Assembly (NCBI GenBank): GCA_038496445.1
Contig: JALMLS010000598.1
Coordinates: 124,001 to 188,000, forward strand
Direction: 5' to 3'
From: Trichosphaerium sp. ATCC 40318
Taxonomy: Eukaryota > Protista > Tubulinea
DNA length: 64,000 nucleotides
Positions 841 to 60,315 of the stretch are shown in pieces (positions within the stretch are counted from its first letter, which is position 1; each line of letters opens with the position of its first letter). The notes beneath the pieces were generated by a model. That model was not told where the DNA came from and did no database searches. It saw only the letters and a list, made by a program, of their open reading frames with translations. A program made the translations under genes and the position numbers.

Positions 841-984
841 TAGTCCATTAATGGGTGATTTTCCTTAACTTTGCACCTAGGCAATGTCTATCATACTACA
901 ACACATACTAAACTGTTCTATCGTCCAAAAATCTCTGAATGAACACCACGTATTTCTACCACTTTTTGGAACCTCGTACTACAC

Positions 985-1215
985 AATAGAATCAAGACCT
1001 GTTAGCGCTCTAACACCAACATCTGTCACATAATCTCAACCAGTAATATTGATGGTATGAACGCCATTCAGCTCTTTAATGCCTTCATCAGTTCCTGATG
1101 TGTGCCAAGAGCAATGGTATGAACACCTTGTAGATATATGCTTCATCAGTAAACTGATGTATCAGATATTTCTATGGAAAAGTGTGCACCACATCTTCAT
1201 TCATTTATGAATTTT
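985..1215 (-). pseudogene. Degenerate LRR fragment of the F-box-LRR family
   Basis: Reverse strand reads YLQGVHTIAL..TDEGIKELNGVHTINI..VTDVGVRALTGLDSI with frameshifts; closely similar to 22240-22475. Confidence 0.8.
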
Positions 1216-1705: not shown

Positions 1706-3117
1706 ATGCAATTTTCTCTAAAGTAGTGCAAACTCAACACTTACAATAATAACATTTTCAGCCCTAACCTTTTTCAAAATTAGCACGTGTTATTTTAATA
1801 TTTTTGACTAACTAGTATTGACACAGGTCGTTTGAATTGCTTAGGCTACCAATAGAAATTATATTTTGTATCCTGGCATTATTGGGTAAGAAATGCCGTA
1901 TATCTGCAACGTTTGTTTGTAAACTCTTTTCTACAATCATTTTGGAGCATTTGGGGTATTGTATGGTGAATGTCAATTCAAGAGAAGCTCTACTAACGCT
2001 ACATGGAAGTCCTCTTTTAAAAAATACAAAAGTAGTTATTGATGATATTTCTATGACTGATGATGACTTTAAGAATATCTCTGGCGTCCATCACCTTGAG
2101 TTAAAGGGTACAATATCATTAACAAATGCTATGTTGGAACATATTTCAGGTGTACATAATCTGGAACTTCACATACATGAAGTTAAACACAAGGCGACAA
2201 GTCTTGGATTTAAATCACTCCAAGGTATTCATACACTAAATTCACAAAGATATTTTAATGATAAATGGCTTCAAGAACTTGCTGGTATTCATACAATTAA
2301 TATTTCAGGGACAGATATAACAGATAAAGGACTTGCAGCACTCTCTGGAGTTCATACTATTTACTTAGCTTGTTGTTTCAAAATCAGTGATAAAGGTGTT
2401 ATTGCCATTTCAGGTAATGTACACAAGATACAGCTTGCTCATTGCAATATTACGGATGAAAGTGTAATATCACTAACCAATGCAAGTGAAATATCTATTG
2501 TTAGGTGTAACTTTTCAGATGAGGGACTAAAGTATCTATTAACACAAAATATTAACATTAAACAAATTAGGATGAGTAGATGCATTCAAATATCAAACGC
2601 CGTGTTACAACTTTTGGCTGGTGTACCTGTTATAGATGTTGGCCACTGTACACAACTAAGAGATGATACTCTATCATGTTTAGCAGGAGTACGTAATATT
2701 AACTTGAGTGGTTGTACATCTGTAACCAATGATGGGATAAAACAATTGGCAGGTGTAAAAGTCATTGATCTTTCAGGTCTTGATTGTGTTGATGACACTA
2801 CTTTAAAGGCACTTGCTGGAGTACACACAATTATACTTGAAGGTACACGGGTGACAGACAAGGGTTTAAGATATTTAGTTGGTGCTAAAGTCATAAACAT
2901 TAGTGATTGTCTCCACATAACAGACAAAGGAGTGAACAGTCTTGTTCACGTTAAGAAAATTAATCTAGCATACTGCACCCAAATCACAGATGATGGTATT
3001 GCTAATTTAACAAGCCTTGAGTACATTTGGACTTATGGTACTAGAATAACAAAGAAGATGATTGATTATCTAGGATGCATATGCAAAGAAGATGTGTGTG
3101 AATGGCCTGATTTTTAA
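1706..3117 (+). CDS. F-box-like + leucine-rich repeat (AMN1/FBXL-type) protein
   Basis: ORF 1837-3117 has LLRLPIEIIFCIL (F-box-like) then ~21-25 aa repeats (GVHTIxLxxTxITDxGLxxL). Acceptor gactaac..acag at 1826; tentative micro-exon 1 ATG at 1706 gives MQFSLKSFELLRLP in frame. Confidence 0.85.
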
Positions 3118-4248
3118 CTAAATACCTAATAAAGTAACTAAAATAGATCTTTCTAAAACATGTGTTGTAGCAATTTGGTATATAAGAATAATTTTCTTGT
3201 ACAGTTGCTTGTCTTATTACACGTGTAGCACATATCAGTCTACAGCGTTAATATCATTACACGTTTATTTAGATAACAACAATAATTGGTTCAGAACCAA
3301 AGCAGCAAAATAAAACCATACATAGTGTCGCCCAGATATCTTATAACTCAAAGTGTGATGTCTATAGCTATGATTCCGCTTTTCATACTCAATACACGTG
3401 ATCAAACACTTTTGAAACAAACTAAATCTTACATAGAAGAAACTCTTGACCAACGGCTTTCTGCTCACGGTAAATAAAAAAGTTATTTCTTACGTATTTA
3501 ATTCACCAAGATCTATTTATTGTATGACATACTTTTTTTCATTGGATACTCCATAACTAGTACATTAATTTACCATTAACTGAATTATACTGAAGATTTA
3601 CTGTATTTTTACAGCTGGTGGTGATGTTAGTACCATTAGAACGCTATAATGGCTGTACACGTGTTTTACTCCGTTACATACGTTTGGGTAAAGTTCGGTT
3701 GACTTTGTATAAATCAACAACAACCTACAAGCTTATGAACAACATGGCGAGCCTTTCCATTTCAATTTGTTTCAAAAGCTGCAAAACTTTCTTTTCTCTT
3801 GTATAATATATAACAAACGCTTGGCGCTGCGCTAGAGCCACAAGATGTTTTGTCTTCCTCCCAATATCGTCTTTTGTTAGTGTTCCTTGGTTAGTTGATA
3901 GAAGAAAGTAAACTGAGAGTGTTAGAACTTTAACGTTTTTTCCGTTCTAGAACCGTTTTGTGACAACAGGCTTTGGAATAAAGCGATGTGTTGAGTTACC
4001 AAGATGACTTCTAATAGATACACATAGCGAGGTTGGAGATGTAGATTCTTTACACATTGCAGAGAATTAACCAAAATTAAGTAGAGCAAAACGTGCACAA
4101 CCAAACAACGTTTATGTTTATTCTTTAGTTAAACACTCAACTATGAGAACATCCTTGCATTGAACAAGGTGAACATGTTGATGTTGTTTGAGCTAGATCC
4201 ATTTGACCAATATTCTGTATTTTAAGTAAGTAGTAGAACATAATTAAA

Positions 4249-9231: not shown

Positions 9232-9506
9232 ATGAAGCTCTTGCTCATATTACTTTCGTGCTTTATAGGTAAGCTAGTATGATGATACAACTGTCGTACT
9301 TTTTGTGGTTATGCTCAGAAAGAACCTTTCTTGTTCACACAGTACCTATCGGATTTGAATCTAACTTTTCAACTATAGTACTCTCTTCAGCAGTTGAAGA
9401 AGACGAGTTTGATTGCTCTAAAGTGGACTTTAGCGCCATTCTACGTAAATGCCAACCAGTCTTGGATAAAATAAATAATGAGAATACCCAATCATGCTTT
9501 TTTTGA
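9232..9506 (+). pseudogene. Truncated secreted-protein gene (signal-peptide exon plus one exon)
   Basis: MKLLLILLSCFI with GTAAG donor, acceptor cacag, exon 2 stops exactly where an LRR remnant begins. Confidence 0.35.
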
Positions 9507-9675
9507 CCTTCATCAGTAGCATATTTGCAGTAACGAAGCCAAATGCGTGAACACCTGCAAGCGATTTGATACCTTACGTCAAGCCAAGAGTATATTATGT
9601 CTCTAGGATATGTTGTACGCTGTTTAGTCACGCTGGTGGCGGTATCAGTGTTATCAAAGAGATGTTGATCAAGGT
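9503..9675 (-). pseudogene. Collapsed third copy of the F-box-LRR gene
   Basis: 9590-9675 matches exon 1 of the LRR genes (12870-12950, 16595-16665) and is fused directly to a GIKSLAGVH LRR unit. Confidence 0.8.
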
Positions 9676-9921
9676 TGACCTGTGATTGAAAGTGATTAAC
9701 ATTACACGCACTACATGTAAACAGTCAATAGTATACTGTCTTGGACAACTAATCAACCTATCACTCAATTTTTTCTCTGCACCACATTGCCACAACACAG
9801 AAGCAACTTGACTGTGTTTTATGGCAGGTTCAAAGAATCATTAAGTAATCAATCTGATTGAAAGTGGACATAAAAATTAGAATTCTACACAGTTCAAAGC
9901 ACGTCTTCACACAAACACTCA

Positions 9922-11458
9922 ATGCAACCTCAAAAACCCCGCAAATCCAATCCAATGAAAGGCCCACAGCCTAAAAAGGTACCAACTCACTTCAAAAGAG
10001 TAGACACTCGGTTGGATCTAACTCATCACTCAGGTAAACCGAGAAGATAATACTCCTGTTCGCTTGATAGATTTGCCGCTGGAACTGCACGATATGATCA
10101 TAAAAAAAGACTCAACTGGTCAAATCAATCAGATATGGCCGGTGTTAAATAAGGGTATGGCGTGGTCAACACGTTATACTCATGCACTAGAGCGGGATGG
10201 GGCGTTTCAAACATTCCACAGAGACGGAAAGGTAAAAACGAAGCAAATTTTTTCCGGTGGGGTTTTGCATGGCGAGAGCAAGTCATGGTTCGAAAATGGA
10301 CGACTCCAGTCACATACCACATGGAATCTTGGCAAAAAACATGGTGAGAGCAAACAGTGGTTTGAAAACGGCCAACTCTTTGAGCAATGTAACTACACAT
10401 ACGGCCTTTTAACAGGAGCACACAATACATGGTATGAAAACGGACAGCGAAACAGCACCTGCACATATACCAACGGAATGTTAAATGGAATATACCACCA
10501 ACAATATGAAGAGTCAGGAACATCGCAGCTTTTGTGCAGCTATGTCAATGGCAAAAAAGATGGTGAGTGTAGTGAATGGCATGAAAATATGCAACTAAAG
10601 GAACAGTGTGAGTGGTTAGATGGTGTACAGCACGGTGAACATAATGAATGGTATGATGATGGGAAAATAAAGTCGCAATCCAAATATGAGAATGGTAAAG
10701 AATATGGAGAGAGAAAACAGTGGCATAGCAATGGAAATCTGGAGCTTCATTTTAATTTTCAGGATAAAAGTGTGTCAATGTGGGAGTACAGCGGACAATT
10801 ATGGATGAAACAAACTAAAGGCAGAAGAGTATTTTACCACTCGAATGGAAACATGCAGAAACTAGACAAAGCAAACGAGCACAGTGAGTGGTATGAGAAT
10901 GGAAATTTGCGTCAGACAAATACGAAGAAGAATGGTAAAAATGAAGGGGATTACAAGAAGTTTTTTGAGAATGGTAAAGTGTCTATGCACTGTAATTATG
11001 CGGATGACAAACTCGAAGGGGAATACAGAAAGTGGCATGACAATGAATCGTTGGCTTTTCACTGCTTTTATAAGAATGGTAAAATCGAAGGGGAGTACAA
11101 GAAGTGGCATTCAAATGGTTCGATAGTTCTTCACTGCTTTTACAAGAAAGGTAAAATCGAAGGACAGTACAAGGAGTTTTATGAGAATGGTAAAGTGTCT
11201 ATGCACTGTAATTATGTGGATGACAAACTCGAAGGGGAATATAGAGAGTGGCATGACAATGGAGTGTTACGGATGCAGGCTAATTACAAAGACAGTAAAC
11301 TTGAAGGAGTTGTCACAAAGTGGCGTGCTACTGGTGTTGTTTCCATGTGTAGTAGATATGTTAACAACCTCAAGGAAGGGCTATACAAAAATGTACCATC
11401 AACGGCTAAAAAGATTGAACAAACCGTTTATCAAAATGATAAGCCAGTAAATCAGTAG
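9922..11458 (+). CDS. F-box-like + MORN (MORN_2-type) repeat protein, copy 1; exons 9922-9978, 10034-11458
   Basis: Exon 1 MQPQKPRKSNPMKGPQPKK, 55-nt GT-AG intron with CTAAC, in frame with LIDLPLELHDMI (F-box-like); 24-aa repeats GxxxxWyENGqlxxxxxYxNGK. Confidence 0.88.
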
Positions 11459-11532
11459 CCGAAAACTGTTATCAGCTCCTATTAACAAATCGTAGAATAA
11501 TCCAATAAATCCTTTTTTTTTTGAGTGTAGTT

Positions 11533-13108
11533 TTATTCGACATACATGTTTTCCTCTGTCAATAAACTGTGTAAAAATTCCCCAAAGTAATCAACAACAC
11601 GAGCATCAAAACGGCAAAATCGATTTAGTTTTGTTGAAGAAGGAAAAGCTATTTCTATTGCATGAAGACCTTTAACTGCATTAATACCGCTGTATGTCAA
11701 ATGTTTACAATTACTAACGCCGATTGTATGAACACCTGTAAGAGCTTTGATTCCTTTGTCTGTAACTGTAGTACCATCAAGGTTAATGGCATAAACTCCT
11801 TTGAGTGCTTTGATACCTTCATCTGTCACTGCAGTGCGAGTAAGATCGATGGCGTGTACACCTTCGAGCGCTTTGATACCCTCATTAGTCACTGGTGTGT
11901 CTTTAAGGTCAATGATATGGACACCTGCAAGTAGTTTGATACCCTCATCTGTCACTGTTGTACCATCAAGGTAGATTGTATGAACACCTGCAAGTGTTTT
12001 GACACTTTCGTCTGTCACTGTAGTATGAGAGAGGTGGACGGTGTGAACTCCTTGAAGCAACTTGATACTGTTATCTGTTACTGAAGTGTAAGAAAGGTCA
12101 ATGGTATGAACACCTACTAACGCTTTGATGCTTTCATCTGTCACATTACATTCATAAACACAAATTGTATGAACACCTCCAAGTGTTTTGATACTTTCGT
12201 CTGTCACTTTGTCACAACATGCAAGGTTTATGTTATGTACACCCTTTAGTGCTTTGATTCCATCATCTGATACTGCTGTCATAGAGAGGTCAATCGTGTG
12301 TACGCCACTCAATGCCATGATACCTTCATCTGTTATGTGTTTGCAACGGTGAAGACAAATAGAGTGAACTCCAGCAAGCGCTTTTAGATCATTATCATTG
12401 ATAGCACTAGTTATGTCAAAATCTGCCATTCTACGTCTAACAAAGTTTGTATCAATGTTACGACACCCAGATAACAATGAAAATAAAGTATTATTTTCTA
12501 CGTTCATGACAACAAGAGTGTTGTTCATGACACCTTTGTATTGTCGTATCTGTATGATATCTGGAATGTCATAAATGTAAATCTTTTTGTATCCAACAAC
12601 TTGATGGATGATGTCAGCCATCAAATGACACGATTGAGCAACACTGAACCTTGATTGTGCATCTGTATGATTTAGAATAGTTGCAATAACCTCTGGAGGA
12701 AAATCAATAATGTCAAGCACTTTGTTTGTCAAATGTTGTCTTCTATTTAGAACATTAGACAAACAAACTAAGATTAAGGGTGTGTAGCACGTACTCCTTC
12801 GTTTGCTTGGATTTTGGTAACTGTGCGTCCTCTGGCTCAAACTGTGCAACAGTTTCGGCATATTTTGGTACATTTATGTCTCTAGAATGTTCTGTACGCT
12901 GTTTAGTTACGCTGGTGGCAGTATCCGTGTTTCCAAAGAGATGTTGATCAAGCTCTTGTAAGAAGCGCTTGTTTGCAGCATTTACAATGTTTTCAAGTTG
13001 TTTTATGAACGTTTCATGCTGTTTTGCAGTAATTTTACTGAATTCGTCAGCATGCCTTTTGTGGTAGTATTTTATCGCTTGTTCAAGTGATACAACACAG
13101 AAATCCAT
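11533..13108 (-). CDS. N-terminal helical extension + F-box + LRR protein, copy 1; exons 13108-12795, 12742-11533
   Basis: ORF 12755-13204 splices (GTACGT..CTAAT..AG, 52 nt) in frame into IIDFPPEVIATIL (F-box) and 21-22 aa repeats VTDEGIKALxGVHxIxLxxT. Confidence 0.9.
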
Positions 13109-13204
13109 GATTTGGTGATGTTTGTAAGTGGCTAGAAACAAGTACAAGTTAAGTTTGATGTTAAGTACACATGTGCCATAGAAGAAACTTTTAATCGGAC
13201 CCAT

Positions 13205-13418
13205 GTTTTTTCCAAATTTTTCGAAAGATTCGATACAAAAACCGAATGCTTATACCCACCAATGGATCACTATATGTGAACGAAGGTCGGGTTCTAGTTC
13301 CGAGCACAGCGAGGACCCGACCGTAAGTGAACCAGGCGCTGTCTAGTTTAGTGGACTGCCCTAGCTATGCATCTTTCTACACTTTCGAATTTTTGTTTTC
13401 GGAAAATTCGGAAAAAAC
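13205..13418. mobile_element. Small non-autonomous element: imperfect terminal inverted repeats and a GC-rich internal hairpin
   Basis: ttttttccaaatttttcgaaagattcga versus tcgaatttttgttttcggaaaattcggaaaaaa; internal ggtcgggtt..gacccgacc stem; degenerate copy of the hairpin at ~17488-17542. Confidence 0.55.
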
Positions 13419-13643
13419 TATATCCCCCTTTTAATTGCTATTTCTTTTAGGTAAAGGGTATAGTAAAAAGAATGTACGACAACCAACTGTTGGTTTTTGA
13501 TGAGCACATTGTCACAACACAGAAGCAACTTGACTGTGTTTTATGGTAAGTTCAAAGAATCATTAAGTAATCAATCTGATTGAAAGTGGACATAAAAATT
13601 AGAATTCTACACACTTCAAAGCACGTCTTCATACAAACACTCA

Positions 13644-15165
13644 ATGCAACCTCAAAAATCCCGCAAATCCAATCCAATGAAAGGCCCACAGCCTAAAAAG
13701 GTACTGACTCTCACTTCGAAAGAGTACAAAACTCGGTTGGATCTAATGCATCACTCAGGTAAACCAAGAAGGTAATACTCCTGTTCGCTTGATAGATATT
13801 CCTGTCGAACTGTTTGAGGAGATAACAACACAAGATTTAACTGGTCAAATCAATCAGATATGGCCGGTGCTAAGTAAGTTCATGGCGGTTTCAACACGTT
13901 ATAAATACGAAAACCTACAAAAGAATGGGGACTTTGTAACGTTTCACGAGAACGGACAAACAAAAACGAAGTCCCTTTATCAGAATGATAACTTGCTTAA
14001 ACTTTTAAAGTGGTATCAGAACGGTCAACAACAAAGTCAAGTTGAGTTTGAGAATGGCTTAAAACACGGAGTATACATGGGATGGCACGAAAACGGGCAA
14101 TTGGCTGAACAGAGTAACTACGTGTCGGATGTTTTAAGAGGCGAGAGCAAGACCTGGTATGAAAACGGACAACTTAAGAAACATTGTACCTATGACTTAA
14201 ACGGAGATGTATGTGGAGAGCTTAAAGGATGGTTTGAGAACGGACAACTGAAAGTTCACACTTTTTATGTTGATTATAAAGTGAAACAGCATACGGTGTG
14301 GTACGAAAACGGACTATTGCATCACCAACACTTGCTGGGGAGCCTCAGACCACAAATAACGTTCTATTATGACAATGGCCAAATGGAGCGTCAGGTAAAC
14401 TATATCGGCAGCAGCTTTACCAAAGAAGGAGAAAATAGGAGCTGGTACAGGAGTGGACAACCGAAGGAGTTTTGTCACTATATCAATGGTAAATTACACG
14501 GAGAGTTTACAACATGGTATCAAAATGGCCGTCGGTCTATCCATTGCTTCTACAATAATGACGAATATGAAGGTGAGTACAGGGAGTGGCATGAAAATGG
14601 AAACTTAAAGCAAGAATATACTTATGTCAACGGAATGTGGCACGGAGTAGTGAAATTTTGGTATGCTTCCGGATGTCTAGAAAACCAACTATCTTATGTC
14701 AATGATGTAAGACACGGAAGATGCGAGTACTGGTTTGAAAATGGCCAGAAAGAGGAGCAATTTACTATGATCAATGATAAAGTTGGTGGAAAGCTGGAGA
14801 AATGGTTCAAAAACGGTCAAATGAAGACTCAAACCTCATATGTAAACGATGTTCAAGAAGGAGAGCATAGAGTATGGTATGAAAATGGGCGAGAACATAT
14901 TCATGCTAATTACAAGAACGGCAATCTTGAGGGCGAATTTAAGGAGTGGCATTCAAATGGTCAAATGAAACAGCATTCCAATTATAAGGACGGCAAGTTT
15001 GAGGGAGAATACAAAGAATGGCACAGAAATGGTCAAGCACTGAAACTATGTACCTTAGTGGATGGCAAGATAGAAGGCAAGTTTGTGGTTTGGCATTCAG
15101 ATGGTACTGAGCTCAAAGTTGGCACTTATGTAAATGGTGAGTTTAAAGAAATGCTTATAGACTAA
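13644..15165 (+). CDS. F-box-like + MORN repeat protein, copy 2; exons 13644-13700, 13759-15165
   Basis: Same exon 1 and intron layout as copy 1 (58-nt intron); LIDIPVELFEEI; 24-aa MORN_2 repeats. Confidence 0.88.
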
Positions 15166-15328
15166 ATGGCAACCAAATTCTCATGTACCACGCAACAATA
15201 AACAAGTACAATGATTTTCTGAAACCAACATAGTTTAAGTCATAATGACAGTATTTATCACTCTTTCAGACAATCATTAGAATAAAGAATTTATTGAGAA
15301 TTGTACTAAAAAAGTAGTAATATTACCG

Positions 15329-16823
15329 TTAGTAAATTAATCTTCCTAAAGAAAATTGCAAAAACAAGTTTGAGTAATCAACTGTATCAGCATTCAATTC
15401 CCAATGCACGATTGAGTGAGTACTCAAATTATCTAAATCAATTGTATGCAGGCTTTCTAGTGCATTAATGCCTTTGGCAGTCAAATGGACACAATTACTA
15501 ACACCAATTGTATGAACACCCATAAGCGCTTTAATCCCTTCATCTGTAACTGCAGTGCCAGCAAGGTTAATGGCATAAACACCTCCAAGTGCTTTGATAC
15601 CTTCATCTGTTACTGCAGTACGAGAAATATCAATAGCATGAACACCTACAAGAGCTTTGACACCTTCATCTGTCACTGATGTATTGCCAAGGTGAATGGT
15701 ATGAACACCTGCAAGTGATTTAATACCTTCATCTGTCACTGATGTCCCATCAAGGTAGATAGTATGAACGCCTTTTAATACTTTAATACCTTCATCTGTG
15801 ACGGGAGTGTCTGTGAGGTAGATGGCATGAACGCCTGCTAGCAGCTTGACTCCTTTATTTGTAACTGAAGTTCCCTCAAGGTCAATAGTATGGACACCTG
15901 CAAGAGCTTTGATACCTTCATCTGTCACATTTTTGCACTTGTGAAGTTTTATCTCATGAACACCCTTGAGTGCTTTGATTCCATCATCTGATACAAATGT
16001 CCCAGAAAGTTCTATTGTGTGAACGCCACTCAATGCTGTTATACCTGTATCTGTCACATTTTTGCAAAGGTAAAGGCAAATGGAATGAACTCCAGCAAGT
16101 GCTTTTAGATCATTATCATTGATAACACTACTTATATCAAAATCTGCCATTCTACGTCTACGAAAGTTTGTATCAATGTTACGACACCCAGATAACAATG
16201 AAAATAAAGTATTATTTTCTACGTTCATGACAACAAGAGTGTTGTTCATGACACCTTTGTACTGTCGTATCTGTATGATATCTGGAATGTCATAAATGTA
16301 AATCTTTTTGTATCCAACCACTTGGTGGATAATGTCAGCCATCAAATGACACGATTGAGCAACATTGAACCTTGATTGTGCATCTGTATGATTTAGAATA
16401 GTTGCAATAACCTCTGGAGGAAAATCAATAATGTCAAGCACTTTGTTTGTCAAATATTGTCTTCTATTTTTAGTATTAGCTCACAAACTAAGATTATTTT
16501 GGTGCGTACTCTTTCATTTGCTTGGATTTTGGTAACGGGATGTTCTCTCGTTTAGCTTGTGAGATAGTTTCGATATGTTTTGGTGCATCTATGTCTATAG
16601 AATGTATTGTACGCTGTTTAGTAGCACTGGTGGCAGTATCCGTGTTTCCAAAGAGATGTTGATCAAGTTGTTGTATGAGGCGCTTGTTTGTCGTATTTAC
16701 AATGTTTTTGAGTTGTTTTATGAACGTTTCATGCTGTTTTGCAGTAATTTTACTGAATTCGTCATCATGCCTCTTGTGGTAGTATTTTATCGCTTGTTCA
16801 AATGATACAACACGGAAATCCAT
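15329..16823 (-). CDS. F-box + LRR protein, copy 2; exons 16823-16510, 16463-15329
   Basis: 314-nt exon 1 as in copy 1, in-frame splice, identical F-box region, fewer and divergent LRRs. Confidence 0.9.
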
Positions 16824-16924
16824 GATTTGGTGATGTTTGCAAGTGGCTAGAAACAAGTACACATTAAGTGACAAGTTCGATGTTCTTACTTAAGTTCGAT
16901 ATTGAAAAAAACGACTTTATGTAA

Positions 16925-17045
16925 CGCTAAGTGCTCACCAAGCAATCCAGGTCTGTAAGTATTTATCTGCCAATTTAGATACGTTAGATATGTTACGAAT
17001 ATCTGTACCAACGCCATACTCAATGAGCATTGCTTCCACACTGGA
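16925..17045 (-). pseudogene. Captured fragment of an endoglycoceramidase exon
   Basis: Aligns by eye with 6490-6605 (QCG..MLxEYG..VSKLADxYLQxWIAW plus splice donor). Confidence 0.75.
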
Positions 17046-17264
17046 TAGAAGTGGTCGTGTTCTGGTCCCGGCTCATCAATCTGTTAACCAACGGCTGGTA
17101 AACAACAACAAACAACAAAATCTGTAATCGGCAGTTTAAAAATATGAGATTTTGTTGGTGTTCTACCATGGCACCACATGCTTTATTAAAGTTCTCAATG
17201 CTCTCAATGGCTCCTAAATTTGTTTATGTTCAATAAAAAGATACAAAACCTAGAATCAAAAAGG

Positions 17265-17350
17265 TTGGACAATTGGAAGTTCATATTTCGGAAGAAGGTT
17301 TCAAAAAGTGGTACTGCAATGGACGTAAGTGGGTGGAAGCTATTAAAGAC
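17265..17350 (+). pseudogene. MORN-repeat remnant
   Basis: Reads GQLEVHISEEGFKKWYCNGRKWVEA. Confidence 0.5.
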
Positions 17351-17676
17351 GCGCAATAACGTTATGGCACCCACTAGCATCACTTTCAGTTAATTCAATC
17401 AATATCGTAACTTGACCACGGCTGCTGTTTCAATCAACGCTACGATTCACTTGTTCGTAACTACCATACCAGCAAAGGATGACATTTGTGAGGAAGGTCG
17501 GGTCTTGTTCCTCGTGAACCACCACCCAACCGAAAGCGAACAGAACTCTATGTTAGCTTGCATTCGCTGTCCTACACTCAAATTGTTTTAAACAAAGCTG
17601 AGAAGACAAGGAGTGATTTTCAAACACATAGAGGAGAAAAGTAGTTTGCAGAAGCTAGCATTTGCCTTATCACCAT

Positions 17677-22079: not shown

Positions 22080-22239
22080 AGTATTACAACAAACTAAAAT
22101 TACTAATAAAAACATTATCATTACCACCCGTCTTTATAAATTCTGTCTTAAAGTATTACAAAATCGTAATATACCGTTCCTTTAGATTTCGTAAATCTAA
22201 AGTTTTTGAAGGTAAGCAAAGCGACAATGTCAAAATTTT

Positions 22240-22475
22240 GCCATCGATATTTCTCACACTGCAATCGCTGATGAAGACATAAAATATCTACAAGGTGTTC
22301 ATATCATTGCTCTTGACCACACTCCAGTTACTGATGAAGGTATTAAAGAGCTAAATGGGTTCATACCATCAATGATCAGTGCTAGTGGTTGATGTGACAG
22401 ATGTTGGTGTTAGAGCGCTAAAAGGTCTTGATTCTATTACCTATGATCAAATTCAATCACAGATGAGACTGTAAA
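22240..22475 (+). pseudogene. Degenerate LRR fragment
   Basis: AIDISHTAIADEDIKYLQGVHIIALDHTPVTDEGIKELNG then frameshift; homologous to 985-1215. Confidence 0.8.
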
Positions 22476-58951: not shown

Positions 58952-60315
58952 CTAGCTCTTATTCATTTCTAATCTTTTAAGAACACCTTCATCAGTGATA
59001 TTGGTACCATTGTATACTATTTTCTTCAGATTTTCAAGTTGAGAGATGCCTTCGTTGGTCAAGTTCTTACAGTTGATCACGTTTAGCTTCTCAACTTTTT
59101 TCAGATACTTGATTCCTTCGTCGGTGATGAATTCACAGTTGCTTAGTGTAACTTCGACAGCTGTACTACCGATGTACTTCAGGCCTTCATCTGCGATGCG
59201 ATGGCAATCTGATATATCGATAGAATAGACACCAGCCAAGTGCTTCAAGCCAGCATCGTTGGTTGGAGTATTTCTCAATTTAATCGTCTTAACACCTGCA
59301 AGAGCTTTAAGGCCGGCATCTGTCACTCCAGTGTTGTTAAGGTGTATTTCCTCTACTCCTTTTAGAGATTTAAGACCTTCATCCGTAATGTTGTAGCAGC
59401 CATCAAGGCAAACCGATTTGGCGCTAGAGATATATTTCAAGCCTACGTCAGTGATGTTGTCACATAGCGACAATCCGATTGTGTGTACTCCAGAGAGCTC
59501 CTTAATGCCGTCATCTGTGACAGAAGATGAATCTAGGTGTATGGCGTATACACCTGCTAGAGCATTGACATCTGTAATGGTTTTGCATCCTGCTAGCATG
59601 ATTTCATGAATACCCGCAAGCTGCGCGACAGTGTTATTCGAAACGTCACAGCATGTGAGATCCGCGCGTTTGAGGTTTGTAAGGAATCGTACACCGTCAA
59701 CAGCTTCTTCACACTCTTCTATTTGTATAGTCTTCAGATTGGTAAGAGATCGAAGACCATTCTCGGTTATGGTATCGCAAGCGGCAAGCATTAGATGTTC
59801 GAGTGAACCACTTAAGGCAGTTAAGGTATCATCAGTTAAGTTATCGTTTGCAATGATGCAAACTGATTTTACGCCTTTGAGAGATTTCATTGCTTCGTCT
59901 GAAACTTCGTCGCCTTTGATACTTACTGTCGTATTGCGTATTAAAGGAGTTTTTGCGAACTCAAGTAGCGGCTCGTTTTGGGTAAAGTAGACAACTTTGT
60001 AGCCGACGTTGTTGTGAACGCTGGCGTGTATGCGTTTGCAAGTTTGAGCTGCTGCGAGTCTTGTGTTGGTGTCGCCAAACTTTAAGATGAGAGAAAGTAC
60101 TTCTGTTGGTTGATCGAGGAGTCCTAGTACGTTGGAGATGTTGTCTGACGCGCTAGGGAGACTGTGAGTACAAAGTAGCGCGAAACCCAAAAGCAACTTT
60201 TTATGATTGATATTTTGAAGTGTGACGGAAAGTTGGATGAAAACGTAGGAGACAACCGCAAGGGAACAAAGGAATAAAATTCTAGTTGGAACACGTACTT
60301 GGTAGTATTGTTCAT
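58952..60315 (-). CDS. F-box + LRR protein; micro-exon 60315-60299, exon 60161-58952
   Basis: MNNTTN splices in frame (GTACGT..CAG) to LLDQPTEVLSLIL; same LRR type as the left-hand array. Confidence 0.88.

Follow-up and report, generated by a model that had tools for sequence, protein, structure and literature searches.

How do neighbouring copies of a gene pair come to be almost identical at the 5' ends of both genes and strongly diverged in the repeats that follow? The question is raised by a stretch of 64,000 nucleotides (nt) of the amoeba Trichosphaerium sp. ATCC 40318 (GenBank assembly GCA_038496445.1, contig JALMLS010000598.1, positions 124,001 to 188,000 of the forward strand), which is called here the window. 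Its contig is referred to as C122, and other contigs are numbered likewise (C27, C137, C57 and so on). Between 9.6 and 17.4 kb of the window four intact genes are arranged as two units of ~3722 nt, each made up of a gene for MORN_2 repeats on the plus strand and a convergent gene for an F-box and leucine-rich repeats (LRRs) on the minus strand. A sequence-only reading of this DNA had described such a ~3.7 kb unit occurring twice intact, and repeat families D4-D8 (spacing 3715-3725) together with sliding identity bore this out. It had also seen in the two copies a receptor array whose exposed repeat surfaces are changing. Counts of silent substitutions point to a different history, an old tandem duplication of a two-gene adaptor module whose 5' ends were homogenised later by conversion or ectopic recombination, and we consider this account probable. 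The parts of the two units are the following (positions in the window).

9783-9921, plus strand: 5' flank of MORN gene 1, presumed promoter and 5' untranslated region; 96% identical to 13505-13643
9922-9978, plus strand: MORN gene 1 exon 1, 19 basic residues, from ATG to a GT donor in phase 0; 98% identical to unit 2
9979-10033, plus strand: MORN gene 1 intron, 55 nt, GT..AG; identity of 83% to its counterpart in unit 2 (58 nt)
10034-11458, plus strand: MORN gene 1 exon 2, F-box-like head (~10055-10210) followed by MORN_2 repeats (Pfam MORN_2, E 7e-43)
11533-12742, minus strand: LRR gene 1 exon 2, with F-box, linker, 11 LRRs of 21-22 amino acids (aa) and C-tail (Pfam LRR_6, E 2.5e-16)
12743-12794, minus strand: LRR gene 1 intron, 52 nt, phase 2 (splice model and transcripts of relatives)
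12795-13108, minus strand: LRR gene 1 exon 1, helical N-terminal domain of ~105 aa; a homologous exon lies upstream in 30/30 LRR loci
13505-13643, plus strand: conserved 5' flank of MORN gene 2; 13505 is the left edge of the similarity to unit 1
13644-13700, plus strand: MORN gene 2 exon 1 (splice model)
13701-13758, plus strand: MORN gene 2 intron, 58 nt (splice model)
13759-15165, plus strand: MORN gene 2 exon 2, head and MORN_2 body (Pfam MORN_2, E 2e-44)
15329-16463, minus strand: LRR gene 2 exon 2, with F-box, linker, 10 LRRs and C-tail (Pfam LRR_6, E 7e-14)
16464-16509, minus strand: LRR gene 2 intron, 46 nt (splice model)
16510-16823, minus strand: LRR gene 2 exon 1; 0.20 substitutions per synonymous site (dS) to gene 1

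Searches and fold predictions were run exon by exon, and exons were joined locally for frame checks and substitution counts. The assembly used comprises 70.28 Mb in 642 contigs with a GC content of ~37%.

Identity between units 1 and 2 changes from segment to segment. On the MORN side it amounts to 96% in the 5' flank, 98% in exon 1, 83% in the intron, 80% in the head and 56% in the body, the last value being that of unrelated sequences. It is 34% in the 3' intergenic segment and 48% in the inter-unit spacer, and on the LRR side 55% in the C-tail, 97% in the head, 67% in the intron and 87% in exon 1. An assembly artefact as the source of the two units was rejected, because the two are unlike each other at 3-66% of sites, the share varying by segment. 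The near identity of the LRR F-box region and of the MORN upstream region with exon 1, noticed in the sequence-only reading, was confirmed by these values. So was the much stronger divergence of the repeats than of the heads, as well as the difference in repeat number (11 versus 10 full LRRs) and in the C-termini, which are unalignable. That repeat-coding DNA is less well conserved than non-coding DNA, as had been stated, was true of the 139-nt MORN 5' flank and partly of the introns, but not of the 3' spacer and the inter-unit spacer.

The contrast between heads and repeats was also found at silent sites. In the head of the two LRR genes (120 codons) dS was 0.07, the number of non-synonymous substitutions per site (dN) 0.02 and their ratio (omega) 0.30, whereas in the array (224 aligned codons) dS was 0.60, dN 0.19 and omega 0.32. 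Silent divergence is thus 8-fold higher in the array than in the head (Fisher test on synonymous differences, p 1.8e-8), and in the C-tail dS reaches ~1.1. Since the contrast lies in silent sites and omega is equal in both parts, it cannot be caused by selection on exposed residues. The abrupt drop of identity had been ascribed to changing exposed residues; this explanation failed, because the silent sites diverge as well.

Such a contrast is not a general property of the family. Among 276 pairs of 24 paralogues the median dS was 1.08 in the head and 1.04 in the array, and in other close family pairs head dS is approximately equal to array dS. The exception is a trio on C122, consisting of the two window units and a unit at C122:98 kb, with values of 0.06-0.11 (head) versus 0.51-0.60 (array). 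This third unit is located 36 kb upstream of the window pair in inverted orientation. Genome-wide, the MORN 5' region has exactly four copies at 93% identity or more, and the LRR head has four copies at 95% or more, the next one being at 87%. Both sets belong to the same four units, three of them on C122 and the fourth on C27 at 233-236 kb.

Nearest relatives change along the repeat regions. The nearest relative of LRR gene 1 is the upstream C122 unit over ~aa 106-270, which correspond to the first ~eight repeats (80-92%). LRR gene 2 is nearest to that unit over aa 256-315, in the last repeats (87-93%), and its middle part (aa 196-270) is as near or nearer to paralogues outside the clade. The heads of the two MORN genes differ by a dS of 0.31. 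In its body, MORN gene 2 has reached saturation relative to MORN gene 1 (proportion of synonymous differences 0.68-0.91), and the best paralogue of this body shares at most 44% aa identity with it; MORN gene 1 is related along its whole length to its counterpart in the upstream C122 unit.

The strong divergence of the non-repeat DNA of the units implies that the duplication is old and that the heads were homogenised later. In the account which we favour, the tandem duplication would date back ~0.6 substitutions per silent site, and later gene conversion or ectopic recombination among the four units would have made the 5' ends of both genes nearly identical. The LRR arrays would be mosaics of segments having different nearest relatives, and the body of MORN gene 2 would have been replaced or scrambled. 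Tracts of ~200-350 nt may homogenise the promoters and the presumed Skp1-docking heads, while the arrays would drift and swap segments.

Selection on the repeat surface was assessed as omega calculated by the Nei-Gojobori method (NG86) and pooled over six independent close pairs. The LRR repeat can be written as G1 V2 H3 x4 I5 x6 L7 x8 x9 T/C10 x11 V12 T13 D14 x15 G16 I17 K18 x19 L20 x21, its most variable positions being 8, 9, 11 and 21 (column entropy at least 1.95). In the AlphaFold2 (AF2) model a strand is formed by positions 4-6 and a helix by positions 14-19. Pooled omega was 0.05 for the framework, 0.11 for strand positions 4/6, 0.41 for helix positions 15/17/19 and 0.60 (confidence interval, CI, 0.46-0.72) for positions 8/9/11/21; the highest value for a single position was 1.03 (position 11). 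Positions 4 and 6, which form the face of the beta-strand, are conserved between close paralogues (omega 0.04-0.22). The window pair alone gave an omega of 1.2 at the four most variable positions (CI 0.76-1.8), which is not significant. The site classes were picked after the variability had been seen, which biases omega upward, and neutrality was still not exceeded. Positive selection on the LRR repeats is not supported by dN/dS; values clearly above 1 at ligand-facing sites, the mark of diversifying selection, were not found with this low-powered method. Of the description of a kept framework with changing exposed positions, the framework and the variability of a few positions were verified, but strand positions 4 and 6 turned out to be conserved. 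Likewise, per-site dN/dS was raised relative to the framework but did not rise above neutrality. Positions 8, 9, 11 and 21 would evolve near-neutrally, and the remainder of the repeat under strong purifying selection.

Each LRR gene starts with an exon of 314 nt, a further 5' exon missing as such from the sequence-only reading, which is followed by a phase-2 intron. The splice model is borne out by transcripts P0001-P0003 of a related organism (52-56% identity), since these carry the N-terminal domain, the F-box and the LRRs contiguously. The domain encoded by exon 1 had no Pfam family, and ESM Atlas leads to integrase SAM-like domains stayed below the trust level. In the paralogues L007-L009 (G000:C199:12001-13095, C252:43020-44114 and C252:58864-59958) exons 1 and 2 form one open frame of 489-490 aa, which suggests intron loss. 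Between the F-box and the repeats there is a conserved linker of ~60 aa. When the Protein Data Bank (PDB) was searched with a profile of the LRR head, the best matches were the F-boxes of AnkB and FBXW7 (E 0.24-0.29). The AF2 model of LRR gene 2 exon 2 had a predicted local distance difference test score (pLDDT) of 82, exceeding 90 in the solenoid, with a regular strand-helix period. Its best Foldseek match was FBXL2-SKP1 (E 9e-14, TMq 0.66), followed by FBXL17, and the match to FBXL2 spans the full length, F-box included. An F-box N-terminal to the LRRs is indicated by weak but concordant lines (Pfam, PDB profile and fold), and the C-terminal LRR solenoid is attested by LRR_6 and the AF2 model.

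The MORN protein consists of a short basic N-terminus, a three-helix head and ~18 MORN_2 repeats (PF07661). Exon 1 is 57 nt long in both two-exon models, and the head can be included only by way of the intron, as exon 2 is preceded by an in-frame stop (10019 in gene 1). The label F-box-MORN, under which these genes had been described, was right about the MORN_2 repeats; the F-box part lacks a Pfam match in the MORN open reading frames (ORFs) and shows by predicted fold only. Neither a Foldseek search with the model of the MORN head nor a word search with the head of MORN1 (residues 1-110) gave any match. The AF2 model of the head contains three helices (pLDDT 67). When it was aligned by VIA-align to 48,161 chains, F-box regions made up 6 of the 14 matches at Z of at least 2 (top Z 3.5), namely those of Cdc4, cyclin F, FBH1, FBXL17, FBXL2 and FBXO31. 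The motif L-P-x-E-[IL], a hydrophobic ladder and L-S-K follow each other in the head with the spacing seen in F-boxes. Among ESM Atlas look-alikes of the head, which serve as a lead only, 10-19% of members have an F-box. With reasonable confidence, on the strength of the modelled fold, the MORN head would be a divergent F-box. The nearest database matches of the MORN body are bacterial YwqK-like MORN_2 proteins (25-37% identity). Across the genome the MORN repeats belong to the 'variant' type MORN_2 (PF07661), and the canonical MORN proteins of eukaryotes are not their nearest relatives; the repeats as a module may have a non-eukaryotic origin.

The suggestion that these proteins are substrate adaptors of Skp1-cullin-F-box (SCF) ubiquitin ligases gained support from the Pfam F-box and LRR_6 matches, from FBXL2-SKP1 as the best fold match, and from two Skp1 genes above the Pfam cut-off in the genome (C137:79701, 99 bits, and C57:207719, 84 bits). 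Judged by architecture and model, both proteins most likely act as exchangeable SCF substrate receptors, in which the head would dock on Skp1 and the repeat domain would hold the substrate. Both families are large. When the genome was searched with a head profile, 150/150 scored matches were significant for each family, which means at least 150 members in each; first-look candidates numbered 1231 (LRR) and 1383 (MORN), and copies of both families were found on more than 100 contigs. The LRR family probably has several hundred members in one 70-Mb genome. Among 1.84 billion representatives the profile of the MORN head detected only 56 proteins outside this genome. Twenty of these were looked up, and each proved to be an amoeba transcript from MMETSP or JGI; of the ten scanned with Pfam, nine contain MORN_2. 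Both families are confined to this amoeba lineage, most likely Trichosphaerium.

Pairing of the two gene types extends beyond the window. The stop codons of the MORN and LRR genes are 74-163 nt apart in the two units. The 30 closest LRR loci fetched contain the locus of the query itself as well as several copies that are identical. In 21 of the 30 a convergent MORN gene follows directly downstream, with a stop-to-stop distance of 30-277 nt and in one case 673 nt; after de-duplication 16 distinct pairs were left. The assessment of pairing is based on flanks of 1.5 kb at 60 loci. When MORN loci were picked by similarity to the MORN2 body, none of 29 had an LRR neighbour within 1.5 kb, indicating that only part of the MORN family is paired. 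LRR genes that resemble each other tend to have partner MORN genes that do so too (Mantel rho 0.37, p 0.007), and turnover is much faster in MORN bodies than in LRR genes. Partners agree in recent duplicates, which implies that the pair duplicates as a unit. The pairing may be a selected linkage, or a by-product of the short spacer and of the size of duplication tracts. Stretches of ~4 kb were identical across contigs for L007/L008/L009/L010 (C199, C252) and for L027/L028 (C231, C450); such loci represent either haplotigs left uncollapsed or segmental duplications of very recent date, and they make copy counts too high.

The two units are accompanied by relics and by a repeat.

9596-9673, minus strand: relic of a third LRR gene, a fragment of exon 1 (tblastn with LRR2 exon 1, E 2e-8, 77% aa identity)
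13250-13400, no strand assigned: young dispersed repeat in the inter-unit spacer, outside the module (at least 40 copies of 91-99% identity on many contigs)
17267-17347, plus strand: relic of a third MORN gene, one repeat ending in a stop (85% aa identity, E 1e-10)

The LRR relic belongs to repeat family D7 and is 85-89% identical at the nucleotide level to both intact copies. It had been drawn at 9503-9675; similarity was found for 9596-9673, while 9503-9595 was undetected at E of 0.01 or below. The MORN relic, previously placed at 17265-17350, proved real, as 17267-17347 matches internal residues 111-137 of its sister, the MORN gene in the unit at C122:98-100 kb. The dispersed repeat, whose copies were scored out of 110 first-look candidates, includes a GC-rich hairpin at ~13285-13322 (fold z-score -2.1) and is probably an element resembling a short interspersed element (SINE) or a miniature inverted-repeat transposable element (MITE); a decayed look-alike is located near 17480-17540. 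Elsewhere in the window there are two further LRR-gene fragments, at 967-1101 (minus strand) and 22219-22447 (plus strand), and two further intact F-box-LRR genes of more distant subfamilies, at 1801-3072 (plus strand) and 59018-60130 (minus strand). The window has eukaryotic character, with sparse ORFs and a GC content of ~37%, and scans of it for tRNA genes and Rfam families gave no matches.

Other histories have to be weighed against an old duplication with homogenised 5' ends. If the duplication were recent, the heads would show its true young age and the arrays would have diverged fast by slippage and shuffling. The unequal repeat number of the copies fits this, and the 63-nt repeat units share 62-77% identity with one another, a condition that promotes misalignment and exchange. 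However, the non-repeat DNA is strongly diverged (3' spacer, C-tails, the LRR intron with 67% identity, LRR exon 1 with a dS of 0.20), and other close family pairs have no excess of array dS. A recent duplication is therefore very improbable; it was rejected as a candidate when the unique non-repeat segments were checked and found to be less alike than the heads. The sequence-only reading had seen in the locus an innate-immune array, with repeat surfaces diversified by viral or bacterial targets that SCF then ubiquitinates. Signs of birth and death were indeed found: the families are huge and clustered, relics are present (9596-9673 and 17267-17347), and mosaic neighbours reveal exchange among paralogues, which is typical of plant R-gene clusters. 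The variability is concentrated at LRR positions 8, 9, 11 and 21, adjoining the beta-strand, where the window pair has its omega of 1.2. Positively selected F-box expansions have been documented in nematodes (PMC8120010). We nevertheless regard an immune array as unlikely, given that pooled omega at positions picked post hoc for their variability was 0.60 (CI 0.46-0.72) with a maximum of 1.03, that strand positions 4 and 6 vary little among close paralogues, that omega of the whole array (0.32) is the same as in the head, and that the drop of identity is as much synonymous as non-synonymous.

The origin of the module was also considered. A published Trichosphaerium draft (70.87 Mb, 710 scaffolds, 37.69% GC) attributes ~1568 gene models, about 6% of the total, to giant viruses; the domains that occur most often in them are F-box and MORN (PMC10521059). 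This count is in favour of a lateral arrival of the F-box and MORN genes from Mimiviridae-like viruses with later multiplication, as are the ESM Atlas look-alikes of the head, which are Nucleocytoviricota clusters with MORN_2 and F-box (0.87-0.89; a lead only), the mainly bacterial and viral occurrence of MORN_2 repeats, and the bacterial YwqK-like best matches of the MORN body. Yet both genes have short GT-AG introns, the LRR intron keeping its position in 30/30 loci, the GC content of the genes equals that of their flanks, more than 100 contigs carry copies, and the few relatives of the MORN head (56 of 1.84 billion representatives) were amoeba transcripts in 20/20 cases checked. No viral relative came up in IMG/VR, which was scanned with three queries: the profile of the LRR head, the MORN2 protein and the LRR alignment. 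The picture expected of giant-virus derivation, viral nearest relatives and no host features, was not obtained, and host-to-virus transfer would fit equally well. Introns and lineage-restricted heads argue that the genes studied are resident host families, and we find a viral origin quite improbable; ancient exchange with viruses, in either direction, is possible. That the module spread as cargo of a mobile element is barely credible. The ~3.4 kb pair does recur on many contigs and a young dispersed repeat sits in the spacer, but there are no inverted repeats of 25 nt or longer in or around the units and no transposase ORF inside the unit, and similarity stops at both promoters, with flanks unlike between copies. 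Little chance is also given to the idea that the convergent pair is a two-component unit kept by selection, in which two SCF adaptors with unlike recognition domains would be co-regulated via overlapping 3' ends and directed against one and the same invader or pathway; dozens of variants of it would have arisen in an arms race with giant viruses equipped with similar F-box-MORN proteins. If this were true, the MORN/LRR pair would be an amoebal equivalent of paired immune receptors that works through ubiquitin.

Several points weigh against our own account, an old adaptor module with later homogenised 5' ends. The conversion history of the four units rests on identity tables. Nucleotide-level constraint, for example by a regulatory element, would also keep the 5' ends alike; the switching of nearest neighbours is left unexplained by it. 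Pairwise NG86 on post hoc site classes has little power for episodic positive selection. As to the proteins, the F-boxes of LRR genes 1 and 2 score 18.3 and 19.4 bits with Pfam, below the cut-off of 20.5, which the F-box of one of the two more distant intact genes in the window, the one on the plus strand (1837-3117), passes with 22.1 bits. For the MORN heads there was no Pfam (25 heads) or PDB match to an F-box, and hhalign of the MORN head to the LRR F-box gave a probability of 4.8%, with the LPxE motif as the only similarity. pLDDT is low for the heads of both proteins (50-67), and exon 1 of the MORN genes is predicted by sequence logic and conservation only.

Taken as an old module under later homogenisation, the region shows how a large adaptor family could stay coherent, with heads homogenised and arrays drifting. 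It also carries a caution: a conserved head followed by diverged repeats is not proof of positive selection unless silent sites are considered. Points of interest are the fixed convergent pairing and the presumed cryptic F-box on a MORN_2 family, and the direction of any F-box/MORN transfer in Trichosphaerium needs re-examination. F-box adaptor expansions are known from plants and nematodes and, to our knowledge, have been little studied in protists; we know of no obvious precedent for a fixed tail-to-tail pairing of two adaptor types, seen here at dozens of loci.

Among known systems, the F-box and MORN families of Pandoraviridae and Klosneuvirinae resemble the genes described here in domain types and in tandem duplications (PMC5995976), but the Trichosphaerium genes have introns, host-like DNA and heads for which HMMER and IMG/VR scans found no viral relative. 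The expanded F-box families of nematodes and plants are held by some authors to be immune adaptors (PMC8120010, PMC3030570). With C. elegans fbxa/fbxb and plant FBX genes our families share a conserved head, a variable C-terminus, tandem lineage-specific clusters and relics (PMC8120010, PMC3030570). They differ in that positive selection is not supported (omega 0.6), that the identity of the heads would come from gene conversion, and that LRR and MORN_2 stand at the C-terminus in place of FTH, DUF38, FBA or Kelch. Mosaic LRR arrays, variability near the beta-strand and a fixed gene pair recall plant R-gene clusters of nucleotide-binding LRR receptors (NLRs) and paired NLRs. In contrast to these, the genes have no NB-ARC domain and are arranged tail-to-tail, not head-to-head; the sensor/helper relation is a feature of NLRs that is unsupported here, and the expected output is ubiquitination, not a resistosome. 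There is also a likeness in architecture to the human SCF receptors FBXL2, FBXL17 and SKP2, in which an N-terminal F-box is likewise followed by a curved solenoid of LRR_6-type repeats. In human FBXL proteins, however, the repeats are ~26 aa long, whereas the LRRs described here have 21-22 aa and a conserved G-V-H start. The Trichosphaerium proteins also carry an extra N-terminal domain of ~105 aa on its own exon and a linker of ~60 aa after the F-box, and they belong to a family with at least 150 members in one genome.

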